The notes beneath the pieces were generated by a model. That model did not search any database and was not told the origin of the DNA. It saw only the letters and a list, made by a program, of their open reading frames with translations. From contig NC_134471.1 of NCBI RefSeq assembly GCF_964194025.1, positions 45,694,001-45,758,000 on the forward strand: 64,000 nucleotides of DNA, read 5' to 3'. This document shows, one piece after another, positions 2,922 through 54,465 of the stretch (the first letter of the stretch is position 1; each line of letters starts with the position of its first letter). The translations under genes were made by a program, and so were the position numbers. Origin of the DNA: Convolutriloba macropyga. Lineage: Eukaryota.

Positions 2922-2933
2922 GAATTCATCCAA

Positions 2934-13230: not shown

Positions 13231-13269
13231 AAACATCAAATATGGGAACAAGCACATTCGATCACCTAG

Positions 13270-14959: not shown

Positions 14960-16300
14960 ATTATTTGGAATGTTGAAATACATTATGTCGTATCCGGCGA
15001 ACAATTATAAAATAAGCGCGCAGACAGATACTTTTACTAAATTTAGAAGTATGAAATAACCACTAATAGGAATCAGGCGATGGGACATTTTTGTCCACAC
15101 ACATTAATCCTATAACCGTGTTCCAAAACCTTTACTAAATTTAAACAATACAGAAACCATTATCAAACTTACAACATTTACAGATTCGATAAACGCTTCG
15201 TATAACATAACCGTAACAACTAACAAAACCACAAAACTGTAGAAGTATGATGAAGCAGTCTGTACGGACTAAATTCATCAGAATAAATCATGAGTCCGGG
15301 AGACATTAATTGAAATAATACATGTTCTTATCCAATAACATAATCCAAAATGGCAGAAAAATCACAAGTCACTATACCGTTTGTTATGAAAAAAGGAAAT
15401 AACTTTTCGTTGTTGTCAACAACCTTCATGTTGTTACTCACCCAACTACACTCGATTTTTCCATCGAATTTCATATAACATTTAGAACAAAGGTTTTATT
15501 TTTTTTTACAACCGGAAGTGAAACTACGTAATAACAGAACATTAATACCGCCTAACATGATAGGCTAAATCGAAAAAATTCTGAACATCTAACAGCTAAC
15601 ATAAGCAAACAAAAAGAATTCAGGTAAGTCAGGTAAGTCACTGGACATCAGGATCGCCTTCGACATCAACATCGGGCCTACCCAAAAGGATCTTCATCCA
15701 CTGGAAGTGGTACTGGAATAGATACTTTTGTGGTTGTCGATGTTCACTCCTTGCTACGTGGGCAACCTATGTCTAGGAATTGACCGACTGACAAACCGGC
15801 GAAAGCGCAGCACACTCAACAAAAAGAAAAGAAATTCCTCCAAAGAGATTAAAGAGAAATTGAAAGTAGTACTCACAAAAACTTCTAAAAAACTTAAACC
15901 CCGGAAAAATGGAGTCAATGTTGACTTCCGACAAAGAAGATTTGAAGACTTTAATATTTAAATAAATAAAGACTGAAAATACTCTGGTTAAAATAGAAGA
16001 AATACCTTTCCTCCGATGCTTAACTAGTTTCCCTTACACACAACTGTTTAGTTGGTACCGATCAGAGTCATACACAAACCTGATATAATAATAAAGTATA
16101 TTTCTCTCTCTCTCTACTCCGCTCTTGTTTTGTATTGAGATATAAGTTAGACTTTAGCAATGGGGCCCGTGCACTGTCTACTGAAGCTCAGATAGAAGAG
16201 TAGCAGACTAGAGATATAGAACTTCAGTTAGTCAGGTAAGATACTATAAGACCTCAGTAGAGTAACCTCTCAGGGTAACCCTACTCGGGACACGTCTTAA
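14960..16300 (+). repeat. Putative 3' LTR-like terminal region
   Basis: Short purine run near 14954, AATAAA at 15961 and near 16090, a (CT)n tract and a terminal hairpin at 16256-16287. The last ~230 bp resemble the inverted remnant at 51567-55513. No 5' LTR is available for comparison. Confidence 0.35.
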
Positions 16301-17368
16301 TTGCTCTTGAACTAGTTATTCTCTATTAAATCGTTTTGTCATAACTGTATTATGGCCTGAATGCGCAGTGGTGAGTGCATTAGGTAATGTATCAGGAGGT
16401 CAATGGTTCGAATCTCAGCTGGGATCCCGTTTTTTCGACGTTTTTGTCTTAAATAAAATTAACGACAACTAACACGTATGGGCTTTGATTATTTTTGTCT
16501 CAGGATATCGATTAAAAAACGATGATTTCTTACAAGTGAAAAAAAAATTCCTTAACACTGGCTTGTATTGAGGTACAGCGACAAAAAACGACAATCGTTC
16601 CGTAGGAAATCGTCGTTTTTATCGTTTTGTTGCGGTTTCCGTCGTTTTAAGTGTTAGAAATGATCGTTTCTTCGTCGTTTTTTCGTCGTTTTTTTTTTTA
16701 TTTTTTTTGTCGTTTTTTTTATCAAATGAAATTGTTGTTTTTTGATCGTTTTCTTGTCGCTGTTTGTCGTCTCTTATGTCGTTTTTTTTTTCAAAACAAA
16801 TTGTCGTTTTTTGGTCTTTTTTTCGTAGTTTCATTGCACTTGAACTAAGTTTTCTCTATTAAATCATTTTAGCATATCTGTATTATGGCCTGATAACGCA
16901 GTGGTGAGTGCAGCAGGTAATGTATAGTGAGTTTAATTTTTTGAATATCAGCGGGGATCCCGTTTTTTGTCGTTTTTCTCTTACAAAAAACGATGAGAAA
17001 TGATCATTTCCTACATAAAAATAACGACGAAATAATGAACAAAACGACAACTACCACTTAAGGGCTTTGATCGTTTTCGTCTAACGACAACGATTGAAAA
17101 ACAACAATTTCTTTCAAGTAAAAAACGAAATTTTTCAACATAGGCCCGTGTTGAGGACAACGACGAAAAAACGACAACCTTTTTGTAAGCAATCGTCGTT
17201 TTTTTTTATTTGTCGTCGTTTACGTCGTTTTGGCGTGGTTTTCTTCGTTGTCATTAGTTTCTGTGTTTTAAGTCGTCTTTTAAGTTTTAGAAATGATTGT
17301 TCCTTCGTCGTTTTGTTTGTAATTGGTTACATCGTTTTTTCTTTTTTTTTCAAATGGAGTCGTCGTTA
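16300..17368 (+). repeat. Two monomers of the ~560-bp tRNA-like-cassette satellite
   Basis: Heads at 16354 and 16887 match those in the 31.2-45.5 kb array. Confidence 0.92.
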
Positions 17369-17369
17369 G

Positions 17370-21560: not shown

Positions 21561-21606
21561 TCAGGTGATGTATCCCTACTTAGGAAGTTCTGTCTCTGAG
21601 CAACAA

Positions 21607-26460: not shown

Positions 26461-26461
26461 T

Positions 26462-29958: not shown

Positions 29959-29959
29959 T

Positions 29960-31216
29960 TCATAAGTCCAGTCAAGTATATCTACTCGATTTTGTTTTTA
30001 CGTTCTTTTAGACATTGTGATTGTGGATTGGTAGCTGCTGTAGGTATCCACGTGGGCTTAGTACAGTCATATACTATTCTCCCATATGCTGGTACCATAT
30101 GTGTATTAATGTTGAATTGAATTCTTCGTTGACCTTCTTCTAATCTTTTTGATAATTGAGGGTTATCTAAGTAATTAAATGAGATGTTATAGTTTGTTGG
30201 TTTGTATTTTGTATCTTGTATTAGGTTAATTATAGCAAGTTCGCTTCTTTGTTCATATGCGTCCAAGATTTTTATTCTTCGAGCGTCTCAAAGTAACTTG
30301 TTTTATAAGCTCTAACGTAGTCGGTGTGTTGTGAACACCATTCTACTCTTTCTTTTTTTGTTCATGTTACAGCAAAGGCTTTTATTTTAACTGCTCGTGC
30401 TTTAGATAATAATTGTACTTCAGTTTTTGTCATTTCTAGGTCTAATGGTTTAATTATACATGTACTGATTTTGTTTAGCTCGTAAAATTTGACGTTGCTG
30501 ATCTAATATGAATGTCTTGTGGTCCTGTTACAGAACCGTTTGCGTTTTGGCTTGTTAATTCTATTAAGTCTATAATTGTTTGTTGACGTTGTTATTTTCG
30601 GTTCAAGTAAAGTTTTGATAAAATACTATCGGTTAGTTTTTCTCGATAGACATTCCAATTATGTGTCCAATTGTCTATTGCTATATCCCACATTGCTTCA
30701 TAATCTGTATCATTTTTAATTACTTCAAGTTCTTTGACCTTGGTTTCGTGTTGAATTACTGGTTGTTTATAATTGGCTGTCATGTTTTTGCGCCGACTGT
30801 GGTCTTTTATGCGTTCTGTCATACAATAGTTTATACGGTCTTTTACACGTTCTTGAACATGTTTGTTTAATATGTTTTCTAATCTTACTTTTGTTTCTAC
30901 CTTGAAGTATATGTATAATATTGTTAGCGTTAAGATCAATATTATGGCTTTTAGTTGAAAAAACATTTGAACGATAATCCTGTGTGCGGAATAAAAAAGG
31001 ATGAAAATCCTAGTGCTTGCTTTGTGTATCTATCAAATTTATAGATGAATTTGGTACAAATAAATGGTGCTGGTGTGGTTGTTGTTATTACAGATGGTGT
31101 GGTGGCGTGGGATGGTGTCGCTAAAACGTTGAGTGCTGCGTTTCGCTGTCTTGTTGTCAGATTAAAAGTGTTAACTAATCTATTCCTTGACCAATTCGTT
31201 AATGTATCCCCTAAGT
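29960..31216 (-). pseudogene. env: Second, diverged copy of the accessory-ORF C-terminus plus class III-like env N-terminus
   Basis: MFFQLKAIILIL.., DYEAMWDIAI..W..NWN.YRE, TGPQD, NVKFYELNKISTC.IKPLDLEMTKTEVQLLSKA, ERVEWCSQHTDY all align with 12111-13200. Confidence 0.9.
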
Positions 31217-33103
31217 TTTTATTTTACTTTATTAAATTTTTTCAGCATACCTGCATTACGGCCTGATAGCGCAGCGGTGAGTGAATCAGGTTATGTTTCG
31301 GGAGTTCAATGGTTCGAATTCCACCGGGAGCACGTTTTTTCTTACCTAAAAATAACGATGAAAAACGACGATTTCATACAAGTGAAAAACAGAATTCCCC
31401 AACATGGGCCCGTGTTAAGGACAATGACGAAAAAAAACGACAATCTTTTTGTAAGAAATCGTCGTTTTCGTCGTTTTGTCGTCGTTTCCATCTTTTGCAT
31501 TTGTTTCCGTCGCTTAAGTTGTCTCTTAAAAAAAGAAAGGATCGCTTCTTCGTCTTTTTTATAGTTTCTTACGTCGTTTTTTTTTCAAATGAAATCCTCT
31601 ATTTTGTAGTTTTTTACGTCGTTTTTTTTTTCAAATGAAATCGTCGTTTTTGATCGTTTTTACGTTGTTTGTTTTGTCGTTTCTTACGTCGTTTTTTTTT
31701 TCAAAAGAAATTGTCGTTTTTTGATCGTATTCCCGTATAGTTTCATTGCTCTTGAACTAGTTTTCCTCTATTAAATTTCAAATGAAATCATCGTCTTCTG
31801 ATCGTTTTTACGTCGTTTTTTTTGGAAGTTTCTTACGTCGTTTTTTTTTCAAATGAGATCGTCGTTTTTTATTGTCTACGAAAAACGATTAAAAAACGAC
31901 GATTTCTTAGAAGTGAAAAACGAATTTCCTCAATATGGAACCGTGCTGAGGACAACGACGAAGAAACGACAATCATTTTGAAAGAACTCGTCGTTTTTGT
32001 CGTTTTGTTGTCGGTTTCGTCGTTTTGTCGTCGTTTTCTTCTTTTTCATTAGTTTCCGTCGTTCAAGTTGTCTCTTAGGTGTAAGAAGTGATCGTTTTTT
32101 GTCGTTTCTTATGTTGTTTTTTCTCAAAAGAAATCGTCGTTTTTTGATCGTTTCTCCGTAGTTTCATTACTCTTGAACTAGTTTTCCTCTATTAAATCGT
32201 TTTAGCACATCTGTATTTGGGCCTGATAGCGCAGTGGTCAGGAAATCAGTAAGTTATGGGGAGTTCAATGGTTGGAATTCCAGCTGGCTCACATTTTCGT
32301 AGTTTTTTTTTACCAAGCAAACGAAGAAAAAACGATCATTTCCTACATAAAAATAACGACGAATTAACGAACAAAACGACATCTACCATGTAAAGTCTTT
32401 GATCGTTTTTGTCTATTCCTACGTTGTTTTCTCTCAAATAAAAAAGTGGTTTTGATCGTGTTTCCGTAGTTTCATTGCTTTTGAACTAGTTTTGCTCTAT
32501 TAAATAGTTTCAGCATCGCTGCCTTACGGCCTGATAGCGCAGTGGTGAGTGCATCAGGTAACGTATCGGATGTGCATTGGTTCGAATTCCACCGGGGAAC
32601 ACGTTTTTTTCTTACATAAAAATAACGATGAAAAACGATCATGTCCTACATTAAAATAACGACGAAATAACAAAGAAAACGACAACAACCAGTTAAGGGC
32701 TTTGGTAGTTTATTTCTAAGGAAAACGATTAAAAAACGACGATTTCATACAAGTGAAAAACAGAATTCCTCAACATGGGCCCGTGTTGAGGACAACGACG
32801 AAAAATGACAATCTTTTTGTAAGAATTCGTCGTTTTCGTCGTTTTGTTGTCGTTTTCTTCGTTTTGTTGTCGTTTTCTTCGTTTTCATTAGTTTCCGTCG
32901 TTTAAGTCGTTTTTTAGGTTAATAAATGATTGTTTCTTCGTCGTTTTTATTTCAAATGAAATCGTCGTTTTTTCATCGTTTTTTTTCGTCGTTTTTTGTC
33001 GTTTCTTACGTCAATTTTTTGTAAAAGAAATTGTCGTTTTTTGATCGTTTTTTCGTAGTTTCATTGCTCGTGAACTAGTTTTTCCCTATTAAATCGTTTT
33101 AGC

Positions 33104-33108
33104 ATATA

Positions 33109-33152
<44 letters not shown>

Positions 33153-33158
33153 TATATA
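33104..33158. repeat. (TA)n microsatellite
   Basis: Visible dinucleotide run immediately upstream of a satellite head. Confidence 0.97.
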
Positions 33159-36100
33159 TTATGGCCTGATAAAGCAGTGGTGAGTGCATCAGGTAATGTA
33201 TCGGGAGTTCAATGGTTCGAACCCCCGCGGGGATCACGTTTTTTCGTACCTAAAGATAACGATGAAAAAACGATCACTTCCTACAGAAAAATGTAAGGTC
33301 TTTGATCGTTTCTGTCTAAGGAAAGCGAATAAAAACGACGATTTCATACAAGTGAAAAACAGAATTCCTCAACATGGGCCCGTGTTGAGGACAATGACGA
33401 AAAAACGACAATCATTTTGAAAGAACTCGTCGTTTTCGTCGTTTTGTTGTCGGTTTCGTAGTTTTGTCGTCGTTTTCTTCGTTTTGATCACTTTCCGTCC
33501 ATTAAGTCATCTTTTATGTGTAAGAATTGATCGTTTTTTTGTCGTTTCTTATGTTGTTTTTTCTCAAAAGAAATCGTTGTTTTTTGATCGTTTCTCCGTA
33601 GTTTCATTACTCTTGAACTAATTTTCCTCTATTAAATCGTTTTAGCACATCTGTATTTGGGCCTGATAGCGCAGTGGTCAGGAAATCAGTAATTTATGGG
33701 GAGTTCAATGGTTGGAATTCCAGCTGGCTCACATTTTCGTAGTTTTTTTTACCAAGCAAACGAAGAAAAAACGATCATTTCCTACATAAAAATAACGAAG
33801 AATTAACGAACAAAACGACATCTACCATGTAAAGTCTTTGATCGTTTTTGTCTAAGGAAAACAAATAAAACACAACCATTTCATACAAGTGAAAAACAGA
33901 ATTCATCAAGATGGGCCCGTTTTGAGGACAATGACGTAAAAACGACAATAATTTTGAAAGAACTCGTCGTTTTGTTGTCGGTTTCGTCGTTTTGCCGTCG
34001 TTTTCTTCGTTTTCATTAGTTTCCGTCGTTCAATTTGTCTCTTAGGTGTAAGAAATGATTGTTTTTTCGTCGTTTTTTTTGTATTTTCCTACGTTGTTTT
34101 TTCTCAAATAAAAAAGTGGTCTTTGATCGTGTTTCCGTAGTTTCATTGCTCTTGAGCTAATTTTACTCTATCAATTCCTTTCAGCATAGCTGCATTACGG
34201 CCTGATAGCGCAGTGGTGAGTGCATCAGGTAACGTTTCGGGAGTTAAATGGTTTTAACCCCCGCGGGGTTCTCGTTTTTTCGTACTTAAAAAAACGATGA
34301 AAAAACGATCACTTCCTACAGAAAAATGTAAGGTCTTTGATTGTTTTTGTCTAAGGAAAACAAATAAAAAACGACGATTTCATAAAAGTGAAAAACAGAA
34401 CTCCTCATCATTGGCCCGTGTTGAGGACAATGACGTAAAAACGACAATAATTTTGAAAGAACTTGTCGTTTTGTAGTCGGTTTCGTCGTTTTGCCGCCGT
34501 TTTCTTCGTTTTCATTAGTTTCCGTCGTTTAACTCGTTTTTTAAGTTAATAAATGATTGTTTCTTCGTCGATTTTATTTCAAATGAAAACGTCGTTTTTT
34601 CATCGTTTTTTTTCGTCGTTTTTTGTCGTTTCCTACGTCAATTTTTTTAAAAAGAAACCGTCGTTTTGTTGATCGTTTTTTCGTAGTTTCATTGCTCTTG
34701 AACTATTTTTTTCCCTATTAAATCGTTTTAGCATATATGTATTATGGCCTGATAGCGCAGTGGTGAGTGCATCAGGTAAGGTATCGAGAGTTCAATGGTT
34801 CGAATTCCAACCGGGAGCACGTTTTTTTCATACATAAAAATAACGTCGAAATAACAAAGAAAACGACAACAACCACTTAAGGGCTTTGGTAGTTTTTGCC
34901 TAAGGAAAACGATTAAAAAACGACGATTTCTTAAAAGTGAAAAACGAAATTCTTCAATAAGGACCCGTGTTGAGGACAACGACGAAAAATGACAATCTTT
35001 TTGTGAGCATTCGTCCTTTTCGTCGTTTTGTTGTCCTTTTCTTCGTTTTCATTGGTTTCCGTCGTTTAAGTCGTTTTCTAAGTAAATGAATGATCGTTTC
35101 TTCGTCGTTTTTTTTTCAAAAGAAATCGTTGTTTTTTGTTCGTATTTCCGTTGTTTCATTGCTCTGAACTAGTTTTTCTCTATTAAATCGTTTTAGCATA
35201 TCTGTAATTTGGCCTGATAGCGCAGTGGTGAGTGCATCAGGTAACGTATCGGAAATTCAATGGTTCGAATTCCAACGTGGAACACGTTTCTTTCTTACAT
35301 AAAATTAACGATGAAAAACGATCATTTACTACATAAAAATAACGACGAAATAACAAAGAAAATGACAATAACCAGTTAAGGGCTTTGGTAGTTTTTGCCT
35401 AAGAAAAACGATTAAAAAACGACGATTTCCTAAAATTGAAAAACGAATTTCCTCAATACGGACCCGTGCTGAGGACAATGACAAACATTGACAATCTTTT
35501 TGTAAGAATTCGTCGTTTTTTTGTCGTTTTCGTCGTTTTGTTGTCGTTTTCTTCGTTTTCATTAGTTTCCGTCGTTTAAGTCGTTTTTTAAGTTAATAAA
35601 TGATTGTTTCTTCGTCGATTTCATTTCAAATGAAAGCGTCGTTTTTTCATCGTTTTTTTCGTCGTTTTTTGTCGTTTCTTACGCCAATTTTTTTAAAAAG
35701 AAATTGTAGTTTTTTTATTGTTTTTTCGTAGTTTCATTGCTCTTGAACTAGTTTTTTCCCTATTAAATCGTTTTAGCATATTTGTATTATGGCCTGATAG
35801 CGCAGCGGTGAGTGCATCAGGTAAGGTATCGAGAGTTCAATGGTTCGAATTCCAACGGGGAGCACGTTTTTTTTCTTACATAAAAATAACGACGAAATAA
35901 CAAAGAAAACGACAACAACCACTTAAGGGCTTTGGTAGTTTTTGCCTAAGGAAAACGATTAAAAAACGACGATTTCTTAAAAGTGAAAAACGAAATTCTT
36001 CAATACGGACCCGTGTTGAGGACAACGACGAAAAATGACAACCTTATTGTGAGCATTCGTCGTTTTCGTCGTTTTGTTGTCGTTTTCTTCGTTTTCATTG

Positions 36101-39100
36101 GTTTCCGTCATTTAAGTCGTTTTTTTAAGTAAATAAATGATCGTTTCTTCGTTGTTTTTTTTTCAAATGGAATCGTCGTTTTTTGATCCTTTTTTTCGTT
36201 TTTTGTTGTTTCCTACGTCTTACTTTTTCAAAATAAATCGTCGTTTTTTGTTCGTTTTTCCGTTGTTTCATTGCTCTGAACTAGTTTTTCTCTATTAAAT
36301 CGTTTTAGCATATCTGTAATTAAATCGTTTTAGCATATCGTTTTAGCAAGATAGCGTAGTGGTGAGTGCATCAGGTAACGTATCGGGAGTTCAATAGTTC
36401 GAATCCCTGCGCGAATCCCGTTTTTTTGTCGTTTTTTTCTTACATAAAAAAAGCGTTGAAAAAACAATCAATTCCTACATAAAAACCACGACGAAATAAC
36501 GAACAAAACAACAGCTACCACGTGAAGTCTTTGGTTGTTTTTGTCTCAAGAAAACGATCAAAAAACGAAGATTTCTTACAAGTGAAAAACAAAATTCCTC
36601 AACATGAGCCCATGTTGAGTACAACGACGAAAAGAAACGACAGTCTATTTGTAAGAAATTGTCGTTTTCGTCGTTTTGTCGTCGTTTTCGTCGTTTTGTC
36701 GTCGTTTTCTTCGTTTTCATTAGTTTCTATCGTTTAAGTCGTTTGTTAAGTTAATGAATGATTGTTCCTTCGTCTTTGTTTTTCAAATGAAATCATCGTT
36801 TTTGATCGTTTTTTTCGTCGTTTTTTGTCATTTCCTACGTCGTTTTCTTATCAAAAGTTCGAATTCCTGCGCGAATCCCGTTTTTTTGTCGTTTTTTCTT
36901 ACATAAAAATAGCGATGAAAAAACGATCATTTCCTACATAAAAAGAACGACGAAATAACGAACAAAACAACAACTACCACGTGAGGTCTTTGATGGTTTT
37001 TGTCTCAGGCAAACGATCAAAAAACGACGATTTCTTACAAGTAAAGAACAAAATTCCTCAACAAATCGTCGTTTTTTGGTCGCTTTTCCGTAGTTTCATT
37101 GCTCTTGAATTAGTTTATCTTTATTGAATCGCTTTAGCTTATCTATATTATGGCCTGATAGCGCAGTGGTGAGTAAATCGGGTAATGTATCGGGAGTTCA
37201 ATGGTTGGCATCCCAGCGGGGATCTCAATTTTTCGTCGTTTTTTTCTTACATAAAAATAACGATGAAGAAAAATAACGATCTTTTGCTACATAAAAATAA
37301 CGAAGAAATAAAGAACAACATGAAAACTTCCACGTAAGGTGTTTGATCGTTTTTGTCTAAAAAACAGGATAAAAAAACGACGATTTCTTACAAGTGAGCA
37401 ACAAGATTCCTCAACATGGGCCCATGTTGAGGACAACGACAAAAAAAAGAAAGGATCGCTTCTTCGTCTTTTTTATAGTTTCTTACGTCGTTTTTTTTTT
37501 CATATGAAATCCTCTATTTTGTAGTTTTTACGTCGTTTTTTTTTCAAATGAAATCGTCGTTTTTTGATCGTTTTTACGTTGTTTGTTTTGTCGTTTCTTA
37601 CGTCATTTTTTTCAAAAAAATTGTCGTTTTTTGATCGTATTCCCGTATAGTTTCATTGCTCTTGAACTAGTTTTCCTCTATTAAATTTCAAATGAAATCA
37701 TCGTCTTCTGATCGTTTTTACGTCGTTTGGTAGTTTCCTACGTCGTTTTTTTTTCAAATGAGATCGTCGTTTTTTATTGTTTTTTTGTCTTTTTTTTTCA
37801 TTCTTACGCCGTTTTTTTTTTCAAAACAAATCGTCGTTTATTGATCGTATTCCCGTAGCTTCATTGCTCTTGAACTCGTTTTCCTCTATTAAATTTCAAA
37901 TGAAAACGTCGTTTTTTATTCTTTTTGTGTCGTTTTGTCTTTCTTACACCGTTTTTTTTTTTCAAAACAAATCGTCGTTTTTTGATCGTTTTTCCGTAGT
38001 TTCATTGCTCTTGAACTAGTTTTTCTTTATTGAATCGTTTGAGCTTATCTGTATTATGGCCTGATAGCGCAGTGGTGAGTGAATCAGGTAATGTATCGGG
38101 AGTTCAATGGTTGGCATCCCAGCGGGGATCCCCGTTTTTTGTCGTTTTTTTCTTACATAAAAATAACGATGAAAAAACGATCTTTTCCTACATAAAAATA
38201 ACGACGAAATAAAGAACAACATGAAAACTTCCACGTAAGGTGTTTGATCGTTTTGTCTAAAAAACACGATTAAAAAACGACGATTTCTTACAAGTGAACA
38301 ACAAAATTCCTCATCATGGACCCGTGTTGAGGACAACGTCGAAAAAAACGACAATTTTTTTGTAACAAATCGTCGTTTTCGTCGTTTTGCCGTCGTTTTC
38401 TTCATTTGCATTAGTTTCCGTCGCTTAAGTCGTCTCTTAAAAAAAGAAAGGATCGCTTCTTCTTTTTTTTATAGTTTCTTACGTCGTTTTTTTTTTCAAA
38501 TGAAATCCTCTTTTTTGTAGTTTCTTTCGTCGTTTTTTTTTCAAATGAAATCGTCGTTTTTTGATCGTATTCCCGTAGTTTCATTGCTCTTGAATGGTAG
38601 CGCAGTGCTGAGTGCATCACGTAATGTATCGGGAGTTCAATGGCTCGAATCCCAGCGTGGATACCGCTTTTTGTCGTTTTATGCTTACACGAAAATAACT
38701 ATGAAAATCTATCATTGCCTACATAGAAATAACGGGGAAATAGCGAACAAAACCTTAACTACCACGTAAGGGCTCTGATCGTTATTTTCCAAGGAAAACG
38801 AACAAAAAAAGACAATGTCCTACAACTGAAAAACAAAATTCCTCAACACCACCCCAGTTTGAGTACAACGACGAAAAAACGACAATCTTTTTGTAAGAAC
38901 TCGTCGTTTTCGTCATTTTGTCGCCAGTTTCGTCGTTTTCATCGTTTTCATTAGTTTCCGTCGTTTAAGTCGTCTTTTAAGTGAAAGCAATGATCATATC
39001 TTTGTGGTTTTTCTGTAGTTTTTCAAGTCGTTTTTTTTTCAGATGAAATCGCTGTTTTTTCATCGTTTTTCTGTAGTTTCATCGGTCTTGAACTAGTTTT

Positions 39101-42100
39101 TCTCTAATAAAACGTTCTATCAAATCTGTATTAGGGACTGGTAGCGCAGTGTTGAGTGCATCAGGTAATGTATCGGGAGTTCAATGGCTCGATTACCAGC
39201 GGGGATACAGCTTTTTGTCGTTATATACTTACACGAAAATAACGATGAAAAACGATCATTGCCTCTATAGAAATAACGACGAAATATCGAACGGAACCAC
39301 AACTACCACATAAAGGCTCTGATAGTTTTTCTCTATGGAAAACGAACAAAAAACGACAATTTCTAACAACAACTGAAAAACAAAATTCCTCAACACCACC
39401 CCATGTTGAGTAAAACGACAAAAAAAAGACATTTTTTTTTTAAAAACTCGTCGTTTTCTTCATTTTGTCGTCGGTTGCGTCATTTTGTCGTCGTTTTCTT
39501 CGTTTTCATTAGTCTCCGTGGTTTAAGTCGTCTTTAAATGAAAGAAAAGATCAAAACTTAGTCGTTTTTCTGTAGTTTCTCACGTCGTTTTTTTTTCAAA
39601 TGAAATCGCTCTTTTTCCATCGTTTGTCCGTAGTTTCATTGGTCTTGAACTAGTTTTTCTCTATTAAATCGTTCTACCAAATCTGTATTAAGGACTGGTA
39701 GCGCAGCGGTCAGTGCATCAGGTAATATATCGGGAGTTCAATGGCTCGAATCCCAGAGGGGATACCGCTTTTTTGTCGTTTCATATTTACACGAAAAAAC
39801 CGATGAAAAACGATCATTGCCTACCTAGAAATAACGACGAAAAAGCAAACAAATCCACAACTACCACGTAAGGGCTCTGATTGTTTTTGTCTAAGGAAAA
39901 CGAACAAAAAATGACAATTTGTTACAAGTGAAAAACAAAATTTCTCAACACCCCCCCCCCCATGTTGAGTACAACGACCGAAAACAACAATCTTTTTGTA
40001 AGAACTCGTCGTTTTCTTCATTTTGTCGTCGGTTTTGTCGTTTTGTCGTCGTATTCTTCGCTTTCATTAGTTTCCGTCGTTTAAGTCGTCTTTTAAGTGA
40101 AAGCAATGATCATATCTTTGTGGTTTTTCTGTAGTTTTTCAAGTCGTTTTTTTTTCAGATGAAATCGCTGTTTTTTCATCGTTTTTCCGTAGTTTCATTG
40201 GTCTTGAACTAATTTTTCGCTATTAAATTTTTCTACCAAATCTGTATTAAGGACTGGTAGCGCAGTGTTGAGTGCATCAGGTAATGTATCGGGAGTTCAA
40301 TGGCTCGATTACCAGCGGGGATACAGCTTTTTGTCGTTATATACTTACACGAAAATAACGATGAAAAACGATCATTGCCTCTATAGAAATAACGACGAAA
40401 TATCGAACGGAACCACAACTACCACATAAAGGCTCTGATAGTTTTTCTCTATGGAAAACGAACAAAAAACGACAATTTCTAACAACAACTGAAAAACAAA
40501 ATTCCTCAACACCACCCCATGTTGAGTAAAACGACAAAAAAAAGACATTTTTTTTTTTAAAACTCGTCGTTTTCTTCATTTTGTCGTCGGTTGCGTCATT
40601 TTGTCGTCGTTTTCTTCGTTTTCATTAGTCTCCGTGGTTTAAGTCGTCTTTAAATGAAAGAAAAGATCAAAACTTAGTCGTTTTTCTGTAGTTTCTCACG
40701 TCGTTTTTTTTTCAAATGAAATCGCTCTTTTTCCATCGTTTGTCCGTAGTTTCATTGGTCTTGAACTAGTTTTTCTCTATTAAATCGTTCTACCAAATCT
40801 GTATTAAGGACTGGTAGCGCAGCGGTCAGTTTATCAGGTAATATATCGGGAGTTCAATGGCTCGAATCCCAGAGGGGATACCGCTTTTTTGTCGTTTTAT
40901 ATTTACACGAAAAAACCGATGAAAAACGATCATTGCCTACCTAGAAATAACGACGAAAAAGCAAACAAATCCACAACTACCACGTAAGGGCTCTGATTGT
41001 TTTTGTCTAAGGAAAACGAACAAAAAATGACAATTTGTTACAAGTGAAAAACAAAATTTCTCAACACCCCCCCCCCATGTTGAGTACAACGACCGAAAAC
41101 GACAATCTTTTTGTAAGAACTCGTCGTTTTCTTCATTTTGTCGTCGGTTTTGTCGTTTTGTCGTCGTATTCTTCGCTTTCATTAGTTTCCGTGGTTTAAG
41201 TCGTCTTTTAAGTGAAAGAGATGATCAAATCTTTGTCGTTTTTCTGTAGTTTCTCACGTCGTATTTTTTTTTCAAATGAAGTCGCTGCTTTTCCATCGTT
41301 TTTTGCGTAGTTTCATTGGTCATGAACTAGTTTTTCTCTATTAAATCGTTCTACCAAATCTGTATTGAGGACTGGTAACGCAGTGGTGAGTGTACCAAGT
41401 AATGTATTGGGAATTCAATGGCTCGAATCCCAGCGGAGATACGGCTTTTTTGTCGTTTTATACTTACACGAAAATAACAATGAAAACCTATCATTGCCTC
41501 TATAGAAATAACGACGAAATATCGAACGGAACCACAACTACCACATAAAGGCTCTGATAGTTTTTCTCTATGGAAAACGAACAAAAAACGACAATTTCTA
41601 ACAACAACTGAAAAACAAAATTCCTCAACACCACCCCATGTTGAGTAAAACGACAAAAAAAAGACAATTTTTTTTAAAACTCGTCGTTTTCTTCATTTTG
41701 TCGTCGGTTGCGTCGTTTTGTCGTCGTTTTCTTCGTTTTCATTAGTCTCCGTGGTTTAAGTCGTCTTTAAATGAAAGAAAAGATCAAAGCTTAGTCGTTT
41801 TTCTGTAGTTTCTCACGTCGTTTTTTTTTTCAAATGAAATCGCTCTTTTTCCATCGTTTGTCCGTAGTTTCATTGGTCTTGAACTAGTTTTTCTCTATTA
41901 AATCGTTCTACCAAATCTGTATTAAGGACTGGTAGCGCAGCGGTCAGTGCATCAGGTAATGTATCGGGAGTTCAATGGCTCGAATCCCAGAGGGGATACC
42001 GCTTTTTTGTCGTTTTATATTTACACGAAAAAACCGATGAAAAACGATCATTGCCTACCTAGAAATAACGACGAAAAAGCAAACAAATCCACAACTACCA

Positions 42101-45100
42101 CGTAAGGGCTCTGATTGTTTTTGTCTAAGGAAAACGAACAAAAAATGACAATTTGTTACAAGTGAAAAACAAAATTTCTCAACACCCCCCATGTTGAGTA
42201 CAACGACCGAAAACGACAATCTTTTTGTAAGAACTCGTCGTTTTCTTCATTTTGTCGTCGGTTTTGTCGTTTTGTCGTCGTATTCTTCGTTTTTATTAGT
42301 TTCCGTGGTTTAAGTTGTCTTTTAAGTGAAAGAGATGATCAAATCTTTGTCGTTTTTCTGTAGTTTCTCACGTCGTATTTTTTTTCAAATGAAGTCGCTG
42401 CTTTTCCATCGCTTTTTGCGTAGTTTCATTGGTCATGAACTAGTTTTTCTCTATTATATCGTTCTACCAAATCTGTATTGAGGACTGGTAACGCAGTGGT
42501 GAGTGTACCAAGTAATGTATCGGGAATTCAATGGCTCGAATCCCAGCGGAGATACGGCTTTTTTGTCGTTTTATACTTACACGAAAATAACAATGAAAAC
42601 CTATCATTGCCTACATACAAATAACGATGAAAAAGCGAACAAAACCACAACTACCACGTAAGGGCTCTGATTGTTTTTCTCTAAGGAAAACGAACAAAAA
42701 ACGACAATTTCTTACAACTGAAAAACAAAATTCCTCAACACCACCCCATGTTGAGTGCAACGACGAAAAAACGACAATCGTTTTGTAAGAACTCGTCGTT
42801 TTCGTCATTTTGCCTTCGGTTTTGTCGTATTTTTTGTCGTTTTCTTCGTTTTCATTAGTTTCCGTCGTATAAGTCGTATTTTAAGTGAAAAAAATGATCA
42901 TATCTTTGTCGCTTTTCTGTAGTTTTTCACGTCGTTTTTTTTTCAAATGAAATCGCTGTTTTTTCATCGTTTTTCCGTAGTTTCATTGGTCTTGAACTAA
43001 TTTTTCGCTATTAAATTGTTCTACCAAATCTGTATTGAGGACTGGTAACGCAGTGGTGAGTGTACCAAGTAATGTATCGGGAGTTCAATGGCTCGAATCC
43101 CAGCGGAGATACGGCTTTTTTGTCGTTTTATACTTACACGAAAATAACAATGAAAATCTATCATTGCCTACATACAAATAACGATGAAAAAGCGAACAAA
43201 ACCACAACTACCACGTAAGGGCTCTGATTGTTTTTCTCTAAGGAAAACGAACAAAAAATGACAATTTGTTACAAGTGAAAAACAAAATTTCTCAGCACCC
43301 CCCCATGTTGAGTACAACGACCGAAAACGACAATCTTTTTGTAAGAACTCGTCGTTTTCTTCATTTTGTCGTCGGTTTTGTCGTTTTGTCGTCGTATTCT
43401 TCGTTTTCATTAGTTTCCGTGGTTTAAGTCGTCTTTTAAGTGAAAGAGATGATCAAATCTTTGTCGTTTTTCTCTAGTTTCTCACGTCGTATTTTTTTTC
43501 AAATGAAGTCGCTGCTTTTCCATCGTTTTTTGCGTAGTTTCATTGGTCATGAACTAGTTTTTCTCTATTAAATCGTTCTACCAAATCTGTATTGAGGACT
43601 GGTAACGCAGTGGTGAGTGTACCAAGTAATGTATCGGGAATTCAATGGCTCGAATCCCAGCGGAGATACGGCTTTTTTGTCGTTTTATACTTACACGAAA
43701 ATAACAATGAAAACCTATCATTGCCTACATACAAATAACGATGAAAAAGCGAACAAAACCACAACTACCACGTAAGGGCTCTGATTGTTTTTCTCTAAGG
43801 AAAACGAACAAAAAACGACAATTTCTTACAACTGAAAAACAAAATTCCTCAACACCACCCCATGTTGAGTGCAACGACGAAAAAACGACAATCGTTTTGT
43901 AAGAACTCGTCGTTTTCGTCATTTTGCCGTCGGTTTTGTCGTATTTTTTGTCGTTTTCTTCGTTTTCATTAGTTTCCGTCGTATAAGTCGTCTTTTAAGT
44001 GAAAAAAATGATCATATCTTTGTCGCTTTTCTGTAGTTTTTCACGTCGTTTTTTTTTTTCAAATGAAATCGCTGTTTTTTCATCGTTTTTCCGTAGTTTC
44101 ATTGGTCTTGAACTAATTTTTCGCTATTATATTGTTCTACCAAATCTGTATTGAGGACTGGTAACGCAGTGGTGAGTGTACCAAGTAATGTATCGGGAAT
44201 TCAATGGCTCGAATCCCAGCGGAGATACGGCTTTTTTGTCGTTTTATACTTACACGAAAATAACAATGAAAACCTATCATTGCCTACATACAAATAACGA
44301 TGAAAAAGCGAACAAACCCACAACTACCACGTAAGGGCTCTGATTGTTTTTCTCTAAGGAAAACGAACAAAAAACGACAATTTCTTACAACTGAAAAACA
44401 AAATTCCTCAACACCACCCCATGTTGAGTGCAACGACGAAAAAACGACAATCGTTTTGTAAGAACTCGTCGTTTTCGTCATTTTGCCGTCGGTTTTGTCG
44501 TTTTTTTGTCGTTTTCTTCGTTTTCATTAGTTTCCGTCGTATAAGTCGTCTTTTAAGTGAAAGAAATGATCATATCTTCGTCGCTTTTCTGTAGTTTTTC
44601 ACGTCGTTTTTTTTTCAAATGAAATCGCTGTTTTTTCATCGTTTTTCCGTAGTTTCATTGGTCTTGAACTAATTTTTCGCTATTAAATTGTTCTACCAAA
44701 TCTGTATTAAGGACTGGTAGCGCAGTGGTGAGTGCATCAGGTAATGTATCGAGAGTTCAATGGCTCGAATACCAGCGGGGAAACCGCTTTTTGTCGTTAT
44801 ATAATTACACAAAAATAACGACGAAACACGATCATTGCCTACATAGAAATAACGACGAAATATCGAACAAAACCACAACTACCACGTAAGGGCTCTGATT
44901 GTTTTTGTCTAAGGAAAACGAACAAAAAATGACAATTTGTTACAAGTGAAAAACAAAATTTCTCAACACCCCCCCCCCCCATGTTGAGTACAACGACCGA
45001 AAACGACAATCTTTTTGTAAGAACTCGTCGTTTTCTTCATTTTGTCGTCGGTTTTGTCGTTTTGTCGTCGTATTCTTCGCTTTCATTAGTTTCCGTGGTT

Positions 45101-45374
45101 TAAGTCGTCTTTTATGTGTAAGAAAAGATCTTTTCTTTGTCGTTTTCTTGCAGTTCCTTACGTCGTTATTCTTTCATATGAAATCGTTGTTTTTGATCGT
45201 ATTTCCGTAGTTTCATTGCTCTTGAATAAGTTTTTTGTCTATTAAATCGGTTTAGCATATCTGTATTAAGAGCTGAGAGCGCAGTGGTGAGTGCATCAGG
45301 TAATGTATCGGGAGTTGAATGGTTCGAATCCCGACGGGGATCCCGTTTTATACAAGAAAATAACGATGAAAAAA

Positions 45375-45509
45375 CGGGTTTTTCCCATTATAGCCCCCCC
45401 CACCTTAGTGGTCAGATAATCTATAGCCCCCCCCCAATCATGGTAATTATAGCATAATGGGGAAGGGGCTTAATTTTTATGGGGGGGGGGCTATAATGGG
45501 GAAGAACCG
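45375..45509. mobile_element. 135-bp palindromic MITE-like insert in the last satellite unit
   Basis: cccattatagcccccccc ... ggggggggctataatggg inverted repeat. Confidence 0.7.
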
Positions 45510-46241
45510 AAATAACAAACAAAACGACAACTACCACGTAAGGGCTGTTTTCATTCACAGGGTAAATCTTTGCTGAAATTTCGTAAGAAATTGGCTGAGA
45601 CTTTCTGAAATTTCGTGAGTCCGCTAAAAATAAGCTGCTATTGCAAAAGAATTGCATTCAAAATGCGTGGAAATATTCAGCGCATTCCTAAAATTGTGCA
45701 TCAGCGCATTCACAAAATTGCAGCGCATTTGTAGCATAATTTTAGCACATTCCACGCATTTCGTAGTCAAATAGCGCACTGAAACTGGGCTGAAATCTTG
45801 GTCTGGTCTGAATGATTCTTTTTAAATTCAATTATTTACTGTAAATTACTTTGTTTATTGCTGACATGGTTCTAATTCAAATCAACAGTCTACTAATTGA
45901 GTTTACCGTCCTCCTACTGCTTTTTAATTTCATCAATTTCATTCAGTCTTTTTCGTTTACTCAGGCAATTTGTTCAACTCCCCTCTCATTGGGTGAGCGA
46001 GAAGAATCAATTAAGAAACTAAGTCCCGTCCCCTCCCATTGGTTGACATAGTAGTTCAGCCTCAAAATCGAAGCAATCATTCTGCGATATTATCAATCGA
46101 TCAATTCAGCTTCGATATATCTCCCATCTCCCGACGTTTTTGGCGAGCTATTATTAATTTTGGGCACTACACCCCCGTAGTTCTGAACTCTAGTAAACAA
46201 CGAAGACAGAAATGGTATAAATTTCCACGGCCTAAATACTT

Positions 46242-46864
46242 CCCGCGTCGAGGATTGGTCGAAAAATAATGTAAGAATTGCGGTGAATAGCGGTGAAAGA
46301 AAAATAATGTTCACCGCAAAGCGCCCGCAGCTTTTTGCGATGAATGCGCTGAAAGCGGTGAATTTTTTGTAAGATCTGCGATTTTTAGCGGTGAGTTTTT
46401 TTTCACCGCATTCATCGGATTTCTTACTAAAAAACTGCCGTACACGGATTCGAACCTCTTATCTACTGCATGTCATCACCTTCATATTTCTCTGCGCCAT
46501 CTGTCACGTAATTGCGTGTTACTTCTTGTAAATTTAAATCAGAATCATTAAACGTTATGAAAAGAAAAATGCGTTGAAATTTTGTAAGATTTGCGGTTTT
46601 TAGCGATGAATTTTTTATTTTCACCGCTTAGGCGTTGAAAAAAATAATTCACCGCTACCAATCGCAAATCTTACAAACATTCACCGCAAAAAATATACAG
46701 TGATTTTTAGCGGAAGATTTGCAATTCTTAGCGTTGAATTATTTTTTTTTCACCGCATTCATTGCATTCAACGCTAAAAATCGCAATTCTTATATCTTTT
46801 CACCGCCTTCACCGCAAATCTTACATTTTTTTAGCGATTATTAGCGTTGATACCTCGACCCGGG
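46242..46864 (-). mobile_element. Non-autonomous CMC/EnSpm-like DNA transposon
   Basis: Ends cccgcgtcgagg / cctcgacccggg, TT on both flanks, GCGGTGAA/TTCACCGC subterminal repeats. Confidence 0.85.
46429..46505 (-). promoter_or_regulatory. tRNA-like Pol III cassette inside the MITE
   Basis: Minus strand: TGGCGCAGAG (A box), GGTTCGAATCC (B box, 46446-46456), T6 at 46429-46434. Confidence 0.7.
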
Positions 46865-51562: not shown

Positions 51563-51719
51563 CAGGTAAGACGTGACCTGATGAGCCCAATGGTCCTATG
51601 GCAAGTCTCATTTTTGTCAAGGTTACTTACGTAGATAACCGAATTGTAATTACCGGATGTAATCTCTTAGTCGTGGCTCTATGTTTCCCGGGCCGAGGTG
51701 TCAACGCTAAAAAACGCAA

Positions 51720-52960
51720 AATTATGTAAGATTGGCGTTGAATGCGTTGAATTTATGTAAGATCTACGCTTGAGCGTAGATCTTACATAAATTCAACGCA
51801 TTCAACGCCAATCCTACATAATTTTGCGTTGAATTTGGGCGTAGATATACATATTTAGCGTTGAATTTTAGCGTAGATCTTACATATTTAGCGTTGAATT
51901 TAGCGTAGAACTTACATAAATTCAACGCATTCAACGCCAATCTTACATATTTTGCGTTGAACTTTGGCGTAGATCTTACATAATTAGCGTTGAATTTTAG
52001 CGTAGATCTTACATATTTAGCGTTGAATTTAGCGTAGAACTTACATAAATTCAACGCATTCAACGCCAATCTTACATATTTTGCGTTGAATTTAGCGTAG
52101 ATCTTACATAAATTCAACGCATTCAACGCCAATCTTACATAATTTTCCGTTGAATTTTGGCGTAGATCTTACATATTTAGCGTTGAATTTTAGCGTTGAT
52201 CTTACGTATTTAGCGTTGAACTTAGCGTAGATCTTACATGAATTCAACGCATTCAACGCCAATCTTACATAATTTTGCGTTGAATTTTGGCGTAGATCTT
52301 ACATATTTAGCGTTGAATTTTAGCGTAGATCTTACATATTTAGCGTTGTATTTAGCGTAGATCTTACAGAAATTCAACGCATTCAACGCCAATATTACAT
52401 TTTTTGCGTTGAAATTTGGCGTAGATCTTACATATTTAGCGTTGTATTGTAGCGTAGATCTTACATATTTTGCGTTGAATTTAGCGTAGATCTTACATAA
52501 ATTCAACGCTTTCAACGCCAACCTTACATATTTTGCGTTCAAATTCGGCGTAGATCTTACATATTTAGCGTTGAACTTTAGCGTAGATCTTAAATATTTA
52601 GCATAGAATTTAGCGTAGATCTTACATAAATTCAATGCATTCAACGCCAATCTTACATAATTTTGCGTTGAATTTTGGCGTAGATCTTACATATTTAGCG
52701 TTGAATTTTAGCGTAGATCTTACATATTTAGCGTTGAATTTAGCGTAGATCTTACAAAAATTCAACGCATTCAACGCCAATCTTACATATTTTGCGTTGA
52801 AATTTGGCGTAGATCTTACATATTTAGCGTTGAATTGTAGCGTAGATCTTATATATTTAGCGTTGAATTTAGCGTAGATCTTACATAAATTCAACGCTTT
52901 CAACACCAATCTTACATATTTTGCGTAGATTTTTGGCTTAGATCTTACAAATTTAAGGTT
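51720..52960. repeat. 30-31-bp minisatellite with ~92-122-bp higher-order units
   Basis: tagcgtagatcttacatatttagcgttgaatt repeated, interspersed with ttcaacgcattcaacgcc variants. Confidence 0.95.
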
Positions 52961-52974
52961 GAATTTTTTGAATT

Positions 52975-53720
52975 CCATTTCAGACCTTTTTATGATTTCA
53001 AAAATTTTTCAAGTTTTTTTCAAAAAGTCAATTTTTTTCTGTTTCGACCCCTATGCTTCACAGGTGAGAAAAGCGAAGTCAGCGAAAAACCACTTTTTAG
53101 TGCTCTTTTATAGTGCAAAATCCATTTGAGACCATTTTACAATTTCAAAACTTTTCAAGTTTTTTTTTCCGAAAAATCAATTTCACTGTTTCGACCCCTA
53201 TGCTGCAAAAGTGAGAAATGTGAATTGAGAGAAAAATCATTTTTTAGTGCTCTTTTATAGTGCAAAATCCAATTGACACCATTTTATGGTTTCAAATTTT
53301 TCAAGTTTTCTTTCAAAAAGTTAATTTTTAACTGTTTCAACCCTATACTGCACAGGTGAGAAAAATCACTTAGTGCTCTTTTGTAATGCAAAATCCGTTT
53401 CAGACCATTTTACGATTTCAAAACTTTTTCAAGTTTTTTTTTCGAAAATTTAATTTTTTCACTATTTCGAACCCTATACTCCAAAGGTGAGTAACCAGAA
53501 GTCAGAAAAATTCTTTTTTAGTGCTCTTTTATAGTGCAAAATCCAATTCAGACCATTTGAAGATTTCAAATTTTTCAAGTTTTTTTCGAAAAATTAATTT
53601 TTTTACTGTTTCGACCCCTATACTGCACAATTGAGAAAAATGAAGTCAGCAAAAAATAACCATTTGCTCTCTTACGGTGCAAAAACCATTTTAGGAATTT
53701 TAGGAATTCAAATTTTTTTC
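52975..53720. repeat. ~147-bp tandem repeat, about 5 copies
   Basis: cca(t/a)tt.agaccatttt starts near 52975, 53122, 53269, 53394, 53543 and 53686. Confidence 0.9.
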
Positions 53721-53998
53721 AAAACTTAAAAAAAATTTTAAATTTTTCTCGGTACTTCTCACATGATAAATGCGTTGAATACGTTGAAATTATGCAAGAT
53801 CTCAGCTAAATTCAACAAAAAATATGTAAAATCTAGGCTAAATTCAACGAAATATATGCAAGTTCTACGCTAAATTCAATGCAAAATATGTAAGGTCTAC
53901 GCCAAAATCAACGCAAAATATGTAAGATCTACGCAAAATTCAACGCAATATATGTAAGATCTACGCTTTATAAGGATTTCGGCTCTTAAGGAAACCAA

Positions 53999-54089
53999 GG
54001 TACATTGGCTTAATGGTAGAAGAGGCGACAAGTAAACAGGAGGTCAGTGGCTCGAGTCCCATACCCAGAGTTCTGGGCGTTGATTTTTT
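53999..54089 (+). promoter_or_regulatory. tRNA-like Pol III cassette inside the element
   Basis: A box TGGCTTAATGG (54006), B box GGCTCGAGTCC (54049), hairpin cccagagttctggg, T6 at 54084. Confidence 0.65.
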
Positions 54090-54465
54090 GTAAGATCAAC
54101 GCTAAATTCAACGCAAAAATATGTAAGATCTATGCTAAATTAAACGCTAAATGTTTATGATCTACGCTAAATTCAACGCTAAATATGTAAGATCAGCGGC
54201 AACTAGCGTTGAAAAGTTGGAAAGTTCACCGCCATTTCTTACATAATTTTGCGCTGAATGCGTTGAATTTTTGTCTTTAAATTCAACGCATTCAACGCAA
54301 AATTATGTAAGAAAATGCGGTGAATTTTCCGACTTGTCAACGCTAGTTGCCGCTGATCTTACATAATTTTGGCCAAATTCCTCGGCCCGGGTCATTTATC
54401 AGTTGAGTAGCAGCGCACGGACCCTAATGCCAAGACCTTACCATCTTTGCAGCTTCTCTATTTGT

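Follow-up and report, generated by a model that had tools for sequence, protein, structure and literature searches.

How a dispersed transposon turns into a tandem array is an open question, for which two main models have been put forward. Under double insertion, adjacent units should be separated by a target duplication, and the case for a circle or rolling-circle origin has come mainly from Bari1, where the junctions are damaged. The window analyzed here, a stretch of 64,000 nucleotides from Convolutriloba macropyga, contains an array in which a first-pass annotation saw DNA-transposon units fused end to end with no target duplication, and which it attributed to excised elements that circularized, were amplified by rolling circle and reinserted. 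We examined what the repeating unit is, how its copies are joined, and which route could have produced the first joint.

Identity of the repeat unit

The main array occupies positions 31222..45546 on the + strand, as located by a junction table and by blastn searches of the window with a monomer and with a solitary copy as queries, and comprises about 25 monomers of 499-624 bp, all in the same orientation. The monomer, of ~536-558 bp, represents an entire MITE, a type of non-autonomous cut-and-paste DNA transposon. On other chromosomes, at least 21 solitary copies span exactly CCCGTGTTGAGG to CCTCAACACGGG, and solitary copies on at least 12 chromosomes align with the monomer from junction to junction, bearing out the earlier view of the monomer as a whole transposon unit. 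The consensus of 21 solitary copies gives an element of ~536 bp with CCC...GGG termini, a perfect 13-bp terminal inverted repeat (TIR) and, inside it, a subterminal inverted repeat of 19-20 bp. The latter, already noted in the annotation as a further repeat flanking the junctions, is real and part of the element; sequence reading places its left arm TTGTAAGAAATCGTCGTTTT at 31449..31468 and its right arm AAAACGACGATTTCTTACAA at 37374..37393, with further occurrences at 37021 and 38274 (+ strand).

The annotation had proposed searching for solitary monomers with CCC...GGG ends and a 2-bp target site duplication (TSD), and such copies exist: the same 2 bp lie on both sides of 17 of the 21 (P about 7e-16). 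No fixed target sequence is apparent, the dinucleotides seen being CA, GT, TT, CT, TA, AT, TG, AG, TC and GA, with GG or CC at 0/17 readable TSDs. A 31-mer from the left end has 210 genome-wide matches at ≤3 mismatches (control, 0), and the MITE has at least 200 dispersed copies. The element is non-coding, its longest stop-free stretch being 67 codons in low-complexity consensus. It thus combines TIRs, a fixed-length TSD, small size and many copies of uniform length, as expected of a MITE. CpG observed/expected is 2.4 in the element and 1.17 in the window. CpG decay was considered as the cause of a CACGGG to CATGGG change and rejected, since these ratios show no strong loss; the change is a plain transition.

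Every monomer also carries a tRNA-like cassette (38058..38140, + strand), recognized by eye from an A-box-like TAGCGCAGTGG and a B-box-like GGTT(C/G)G followed by a T-run. ARAGORN finds 0 tRNA genes in the cassette, Rfam searches of the array and solitary copies (gathering threshold and E up to 10) give no tRNA match, and the cassette is no more conserved than the remainder of the element. A tRNA origin, or descent from a tRNA-derived SINE, was therefore rejected.

Several superfamilies were compared with the element. piggyBac elements pair CCC...GGG termini with a TTAA target duplication; the present termini agree with this, but the flanking bases differ from TTAA, and piggyBac was rejected. 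NuwaI was rejected on TSD or termini. PHIS/ISL2EU elements duplicate AT within A/AT/T and have TIRs beginning GG (PMC4482050), which excludes them given the varied TSDs (CA, GT, TT and others) and a TIR beginning CCC. The CMC group (CACTA/EnSpm-Mirage-Chapaev) has TSDs of 2-4 bp (PMC4482050, PMC12730594), animal CACTA elements making 2-bp TSDs (PMC6004678), and resembles the present family in its 2-bp TSD and subterminal repeats. CMC termini are, however, typically CAC...GTG or CA...TG (PMC4079192, PMC12730594), whereas here they are CCC...GGG. The genome contains 73 Transposase_21 (PF02992) matches, many with open frames of 950-1070 aa, a further point of resemblance, though no autonomous partner was linked to the MITE. 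Longer copies of the element, considered as autonomous partners, were rejected: the one at C5:13266900-13268639 owes its length to a 1.2-kb insert nested in a MITE and carries no transposase, and C12:30317568 and C12:30318877 are two left-end fragments with no transposase.

Organization of the array and its junctions

The C4 locus holds ~46 units in ~26 kb and is the single locus genome-wide of this MITE-derived array. Besides the main array, blastn coordinates place a further piece in the window at 16297..17362 (+ strand; junction at 17131-17157), and outside the window the array continues upstream at C4:45681476-45691112 and in an inverted piece at C4:45771902-45772685. The piece at 16297 restarts at element position ~235, and the upstream out-of-window block ends at ~236; because element positions continue across the gap, the ~19-kb Gypsy element ending at 16296 must have inserted into a monomer.

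The main array is irregular and old from 31222 to 38320 and regular from 38321 to 45349. Blastn, the junction table and tree analysis identify its youngest block at 38853..44977 (+ strand; also delimited as 38839-44990), in which 11 monomers form higher-order repeats and alternate monomers are 99% identical within 39400-42190. The upstream block has a 3-monomer higher-order repeat, and an LTR-like insert is present in three copies, each with an identical array flank. Higher-order repeats of 2 and 3 monomers, together with blocks duplicated along with one foreign insert, show that the array grew by unequal exchange. Within the last, partial monomer lies a foreign insert of 158 bp, its ends formed by a C-run and a G-run (45350..45507, blastn coordinates). 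Both array edges fall within a monomer, the left at position ~520 beside LTR-like sequence and the right at ~456; the dimer model favored below predicts TIRs and one 2-bp TSD at the outer bounds of the whole array. The original edges are probably masked by later LTR-type insertions or rearrangements. Head-to-tail organization with higher-order repeats fits a classical satellite, but such satellites have high copy numbers and usually occupy many loci. With its ~46 units all at one locus, the array here is a TE-derived tandem array, or proto-satellite, rather than a classical satellite.

Across the locus (window and flanks), 40/40 junctions lie in one register with no spacer, and the duplication expected in the junction after double insertion is present in 0/40. 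Spacer bases at the junctions, which would have spoken against the fusion proposed in the annotation, are thus missing from all 40. Thirty-six junctions have the same length (9 conserved nt + 10 nt + 8 conserved nt), and four are C-run variants. A junction search finds CCTCAACATGGG abutting CCCGTGTTGAGG without scar at 32768..32791, the same sequence at 33367-33390 and a variant at 31397-31420, which places the GGG/CCC boundaries at 32779/32780, 33378/33379 and 31408/31409, where the annotation had them. Sequence and genome searches likewise confirm a perfect 26-bp palindromic junction at 37408..37433, in which one 13-bp TIR faces another; a 167-bp short-read contig from run X1 covers 37305-37471, palindrome included, with zero differences. 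Exact GGGCCC is retained at only 5/40 junctions: those of the upstream block read GGG/CTT, and those of the youngest block (38839-44990) read CAC/CCC or have a C-run of 7-13. According to a published idea, loss of functional cleavage sites is what allows an array to persist, and persisting arrays tend to have damaged ends (PMC5932611). The single mutated terminal triplet in each recently expanded block (GGG/CTT or CAC/CCC) fits such persistence.

In a genome-wide search of 1.18 Gb, the junction of this family is confined to the C4 locus, which implies a single origin. The many spacerless junctions of the window are one founding event copied, not many independent events, since all descend from one founding joint multiplied by unequal exchange.

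Related elements and scarless joints in other families

The window contains further elements of the same kind (all + strand). End and flank readings identify a solitary MITE at 46242..46864 with ends CCCGCGTCGAGG...CCTCGACCCGGG, a solitary 2.7-kb element at 51687..54391 with ends CCCGGGCCGAGG...CCTCGGCCCGGG, and a solitary element at 54519..55498 with ends CCCAGGTCGAGG...CCTCAACCTGGG. Sequence reading adds an element with left end CCCAGGTTGAGG at 58973..59857, the remainder of which enters an N stretch. Three dispersed relatives in the window had been credited with 2-bp TSDs; this holds for 46242-46864 (TT/TT), but the flanks of 51687-54391 and 54519-55498 match at only one base of two. Several families whose bodies are unrelated are delimited by the end class CCC NN G YY GAGG, and every one of them has CCC...GGG termini.

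Scarless fusion is not confined to the C4 family. A second family of this end class has three exact head-to-tail scarless junctions on C15, identical to a 42-nt sequence made in silico by joining the left and right ends of the copy at 51687-54391 in the window. At least five other scarless end-to-end abutments lie on C1, C3 (two), C5 and C8, plus two unplaced contigs. Patterns built from window copies of two families (one head-to-tail, two tail-to-tail, one head-to-head) gave no match to the abutments on C1, C3, C5 and C8, which places these in other families. Few spacers of 1-10 bp occur in the end class (reversed-pattern control, 0 hits), and no junction with a 2-bp spacer was found for it genome-wide. 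Spacer 0 accounts for 4/9 events (binomial P about 0.006) and is several times commoner than any spacer of 1-10 bp. The scarless joint of the second family, on another chromosome, suggests direct joining of cut ends rather than two landings at one site.

Origin and growth of the array

With somewhat better than even confidence, we regard direct ligation of transposase-cut ends into a MITE dimer, followed by growth through unequal exchange, as the best explanation of the C4 locus. A right end and a left end, cut flush by transposase, would have been ligated directly, once, in a joint resembling a V(D)J signal joint or a perfect hAT episome joint. This could have happened when a monomer circle recombined with a resident copy, or when the ends of copies on sister chromatids were joined; both routes would yield a head-to-tail dimer with intact TIRs and a joint free of target duplication. 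The dimer would then have grown to about 46 units (about 26 kb) through unequal exchange, and the array would later have been disrupted by LTR-retrotransposon insertions and an inversion. We infer cut ends because the exact element ends are set by the transposase alone, and neither TIR has lost any sequence where the two meet. The end-to-end circularization proposed in the annotation survives in part: exact joining of cut ends is the best reading, and a circle and a sister-chromatid joint both fit. A circle could not explain the abutments on C1, C3, C5 and C8 if many of them were inverted.

The remainder of the earlier proposal, in which the circle gave rise to a rolling-circle concatemer that inserted as a ready-made array, appears improbable. 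A spacerless TIR-to-TIR joint is compatible with it, and both array edges lie at arbitrary intra-monomer positions, as in a randomly broken concatemer; such edges are also reported for Bari1 (PMC5932611, citing Marsano 2003). These edges, however, coincide with later LTR-type insertions or rearrangements and are probably not original. The visible amplification is in multi-monomer blocks, which do not result when a 536-bp circle is copied by rolling replication. The element has no associated replication function, and one dimer plus unequal exchange accounts for the same data in fewer steps. Neither rolling-circle amplification nor wholesale reinsertion has specific support: higher-order repeats and duplicated blocks are instead the signature of unequal exchange, and every junction at C4 goes back to the same founding joint. 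We assign a similarly small chance to a second insertion into the GG (or CC) dinucleotide at the end of a copy already in place, followed by expansion of the dimer. A 2-bp staggered cut there also yields a scarless-looking joint, the element accepts 2-bp targets of any sequence, clustered insertions with 1-10-bp spacers demonstrate local or nested insertion, and nothing beyond normal transposition is needed. Yet one particular dinucleotide is required, whereas spacer 0 is several times commoner than any spacer from 1 to 10 bp and neither GG nor CC occurs among the readable TSDs. Inverted and direct fusions should also be equally frequent, but every junction in both oriented families (C4 and C15) is head-to-tail, although these represent two independent events only.

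Double insertion at the same target, as modeled by McGurk and Barbash, with exact loss of the 2-bp spacer before expansion, seems very unlikely. Double insertion itself is well attested in arrays of P, hobo and R1, and small dimer-junction deletions are common (PMC5932611), but here the deletion must remove exactly 2 bp, spare both TIRs and recur identically in the C15 family and at other loci, and no 2-bp-spacer junction exists genome-wide for this end class. Direct joining is favored over this route because scarless fusion recurs, on C15 and at the at least five further loci, unaccompanied by such junctions. Just as little weight falls on the reverse direction, in which the array came first and the dispersed copies derive from monomers excised from it at a palindrome that was already there. 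Release of monomers from abutted TIRs is conceivable, and midpoint rooting of the unrooted tree puts the solitary clade among the array blocks; the solitary copies nevertheless form their own star-like clade (SH-aLRT 97), nested in no array block. Since several families with unrelated bodies share the CCC...GGG ends, these ends belong to a transposon lineage and not to this satellite, which also counts against an array-first origin.

The closest precedents each differ in the joint or the unit. For Bari1 arrays in Drosophila melanogaster heterochromatin, a circle or rolling-circle origin was proposed (Caizzi 1993; Marsano 2003; as relayed in PMC5932611). In that account, Bari1 arrays resemble C4 as head-to-tail whole cut-and-paste transposons with TSD-free junctions and partial edge units, but Bari1 junctions lost TIR sequence and the element is autonomous, Tc1-like and TA-targeting, whereas the C4 TIRs are complete and abut exactly and the unit is a 536-bp MITE accepting any 2-bp target. 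Of the features of a Bari1-type array, the absence of a TSD agrees with C4 and the loss of TIR sequence disagrees, while the partial edge units of C4 coincide with later insertions. Tandems of hobo, P-element and R1 (McGurk and Barbash 2018, PMC5932611) share a single founding dimer, unequal exchange and a copied joint, but their junctions keep the duplication (8 bp in hobo and P, 33 nt in R1), whereas the corresponding 2-bp spacer is absent from all C4 junctions and from the second family. Xstir and miDNA4 of Xenopus and DTC84 of Donax (PMC12628747, PMC3879986) also pair a MITE family with a tandem array of shared sequence, but there the repeating unit is an internal MITE segment, whereas at C4 it is the whole element with both TIRs. 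Perfect end-to-end joints occur among hobo/Hermes episomes (O'Brochta 2009, PMC2803484). In these and in V(D)J signal joints, as at C4, ends are ligated exactly with no bases lost or gained, but they are extrachromosomal assay products, whereas the C4 joint is chromosomal, inherited and amplified. Bacterial IS minicircles and (IS)2 tandem dimers (IS3, IS30, IS256) also have abutted ends and are recurrent transposase products; their junctions carry a spacer of about TSD length from flanking DNA, in contrast to the zero spacer of the C4 joint.

The C4 junction is undamaged, with two complete ends and zero spacer in a family with a well-documented 2-bp duplication. Together, the C4 and C15 joints constitute unusually direct sequence evidence that cut ends can join exactly and persist in the germline, and young loci (C15 and others) can be named where the competing models predict differently. 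More tentatively, and with less than even confidence, the transposase of elements with CCC...GGG ends and 2-bp TSDs may regularly make exact end-to-end joints that re-enter the chromosome, so that dimers are recurrent and seed arrays in several families. If so, these joints, in the form of signal-joint-like circles or inter-chromatid joints, would feed the birth of satellites and provide a natural parallel in eukaryotes to V(D)J excision circles or IS dimers.

The array unit is a complete MITE

The first-pass annotation had read the satellite monomers as DNA-transposon units, for which lone dispersed monomers with 2-bp target-site duplications (TSDs) should exist. Such copies are present. A genome search with one monomer, cut from junction to junction, yields about 20 solitary matches on other chromosomes that span positions 1 to 552 of the monomer. 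Oriented and viewed with their flanks, the solitary copies have the left end CCCGTGTTGAGGAC and the right end TTCCTCAACACGGG, and 17 of 21 carry identical 2-bp flanks on both sides. The flanking dinucleotides include CA, GT, TT, CT, TA, AT, TG, AG, TC, and GA; since the chance of a dinucleotide match here is 0.078, 17 of 21 corresponds to a P of about 7e-16. A left-end 31-mer gives 210 matches at up to three mismatches, and its reversed control gives none. The consensus is about 536 bp long and contains no meaningful ORF. It has a 13-bp terminal inverted repeat (TIR) and a 19–20-bp subterminal inverted repeat, the latter being the further inverted repeat that had been noticed beside the junction. 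Short-read contigs of other sequencing runs diverge from the array exactly at element ends, as at 38313 and 38859. What repeats in the array is a MITE that makes 2-bp TSDs.

Every monomer carries a tRNA-like cassette at the same place (38058-38140 in one copy; consensus positions ~297-385), in which TAGCGCAGTGG (A-box-like) is followed about 45 nt on by GGTTCGAATCC (B-box-like) and then by a T-run. Neither ARAGORN nor Rfam calls it as a tRNA, and it is conserved no better than the rest of the unit. An (AT)28 microsatellite at 33104-33159 is expanded within one monomer, just upstream of the cassette. The element, in the array (31222-45546) as in solitary copies L001-L029, is very CpG-rich, with an observed/expected ratio of 2.4–2.7 that stems from TCGTCGTTTT-type motifs; the window-wide value of 1.17 gives no sign of CpG depletion.

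A 2-bp TSD occurs in CMC and some PHIS groups. CMC elements agree with the present MITE in TSD but not in their CAC...GTG termini, while piggyBac elements share its CCC...GGG termini but require a TTAA target. ISL2EU, which requires an AT target and GG termini, is ruled out. The genome holds at least 70 Transposase_21 matches, many of them with open frames.

Layout and junctions of the array

The window, C4:45694001-45758000 of a 1.18-Gb animal assembly, is AT-rich. A monomer from the regular part of the array, searched against it, reveals an unbroken + strand series of units at 31222-45546 and a further piece at 16297-17362. We also surveyed 40 kb on each side, 144 kb in all. Upstream, the same repeat fills C4:45681476-45691112 on the window's own chromosome, and downstream a short inverted piece lies at window-equivalent 77902-78685, so that the single locus totals about 46 units and about 26 kb. 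A Gypsy-type element of ~19 kb occupies 1-16296 and extends upstream to C4:45691113. The upstream block ends at element position ~236 and the 16297 piece restarts at ~235, which indicates that the Gypsy element inserted into a monomer; the continuity of array sequence across it makes it younger than the array. A second interruption lies at 17363-31221. The left array edge starts about 14 bp ahead of a junction and adjoins LTR-like sequence, and the right edge falls at element position ~456, beyond a 158-bp foreign insert. Both edges thus lie within monomers and are probably secondary. The 158-bp insert (45350-45507, in the last partial monomer) carries a C-run at one end and a G-run at the other and is possibly a further small foldback or MITE-like element. 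Rightward of the array, the 11-bp palindromic motif CTTGCAAGAAT recurs in dense arrays across 47619-48929; TCTTGCAAGA palindrome cassettes are noted elsewhere in the genome.

As junctions we counted every site, across the 144 kb, at which a conserved right-end word faces a conserved left-end word. There are 40: 14 upstream, one at 17131, 12 in 31395-38333, 12 in 38839-44990, and one in the inverted piece. The conserved words stand exactly 10 nt apart in 36 of them, a distance taken up by N-GGG-CCC-N plus one base per side, which leaves no room for a spacer; the remaining four are C-run length variants. End-to-end fusion without target duplication, as the first-pass annotation proposed, is therefore borne out, and the spacer bases that would have argued against it do not appear. 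The central six bases are GGGCCC in only five junctions (31406, 32777, 33376, 33913, and 37418). The array's form of the joint is CATGGG/CCCGTG; ends of the solitary-copy type would instead join as CACGGG/CCCGTG. Joints of the upstream block read GGG/CTT, and those of the youngest block read CAC/CCC or contain a C-run; these variants go back to one ancestral joint that acquired substitutions. In two pattern searches of the whole genome, one of which allowed 2–24 nt between TIR cores, this family's junction turns up at the array locus only, so all 40 junctions are copies of a single founding joint and not independent events. A 167-bp contig of run X1 spans the perfect palindrome (37305-37471) without differences. 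A 151-bp contig of run X5, whose label names a different organism, shows no differences across 38271-38421, including the junction at 38307-38333; at a depth of 2, this hints faintly that the array is older than, or common to, the taxon of that run.

Growth of the array

We built a maximum-likelihood tree from 29 full-length monomers and 21 solitary copies. The latter form one star-like group (SH-aLRT 97), and three parts are resolved in the array: an upstream block, a middle grade that is old, and a young block. Pairwise distance averages 0.15 among the solitary copies; within the array it averages 0.19 in the middle part, 0.12 in the upstream block, and 0.09 in the young one. Alternate monomers are 99% identical within 39400-42190, while the upstream monomers are of three types in A-B-C order. 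A 335-bp LTR-like insert occurs three times outside the window (C4:45688535-45688869, 45690532-45690866, and 45681154-45681475), each time beside a junction and flanked by an identical 13 bp of array sequence; identity is 99% between two of the copies and 91% for the third. The shared flank implies that the insert was copied along with array blocks. Together, the alternating monomers, the A-B-C order, and the triplicated insert point to unequal exchange of multi-monomer blocks. No trace is seen of the rolling-circle amplification invoked in the first-pass annotation, and nothing in the array calls for it.

Scarless joints elsewhere and the founding joint

The terminal motif CCC NN G YY GAGG is common to window elements with unrelated bodies (46242-46864, 51687-54391, 54519-55498, and 58973 onward). 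A genome-wide pattern of this class (right end, 0–10 nt, left end) matches 15 places per strand, and the reversed control matches none. Outside the array locus, spacer 0 occurs on chromosomes C5, C8, and C15 (twice) and on two unplaced contigs; spacers 1, 6, 7, and 9 occur at one place each and spacer 10 at two, while spacer 2 is found nowhere in this search. With one mismatch tolerated, further scarless joints appear on C1 and C3 (two), and C15 gains a third. The joints on placed chromosomes lie at C15:37427956-37432208, C5:17360060, C8:45074003, C1:16381311, C3:13652321, and C3:13846572. Four of nine independent events fall at spacer 0, the value named beforehand (P about 0.006). For the 2.7-kb element at 51687-54391, which belongs to a different family, the right end was fused in silico to the left end; the resulting 42-nt pattern fits all three C15 junctions, two without mismatch and one with a single mismatch. 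The three share a strand and are spaced 2.5 and 1.7 kb apart. A head-to-tail array with a scarless joint is thus found independently in a second family. Family-specific orientation patterns gave no match at the scarless joints off C15. Two tail-to-head abutments of the same end class on C9 (59157288 and 59165372), 8.1 kb apart with a near-identical 10-bp spacer, are a pair produced by duplication or else form a composite unit.

Whole-element DNA-transposon arrays are already known (PMC5932611). Exact end-to-end joining has been recorded among hobo/Hermes episomes and is standard in V(D)J signal joints (PMC2803484). In hobo and P arrays the junction retains the TSD, and Bari1 has no TSD but truncated TIRs (PMC5932611); here, by contrast, both TIRs are complete and no spacer is present. 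In MITE-derived satellites an internal segment forms the repeat unit; here it is the whole element.

Because the transposase alone marks exact element ends, a whole-ended, spacerless joint is most simply explained by ligation of flush-cut ends. Insertion of a second copy into a terminal GG or CC would leave a joint of scarless appearance too, and predicts an extra GG or CC at one of the outer ends and inverted fusions as frequent as direct ones; we regard this origin as unlikely. Double insertion with an exact 2-bp loss would need that loss to recur identically and is very improbable, and an array that preceded its dispersed copies is similarly hard to credit, as the ends are common to unrelated families. 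The circle origin put forward in the first-pass annotation gains support from the recurrence of scarless joints, but its rolling-circle step does not: that version shares its first step with the direct joining of cut ends, adds others without trace, and seems doubtful. We lean towards exact joining, in which two flush-cut transposon ends would be ligated directly; a dimer would arise either when a monomer circle recombined with a resident copy or when the right end on one sister chromatid was joined to the left end on the other, and would then be enlarged by unequal exchange.
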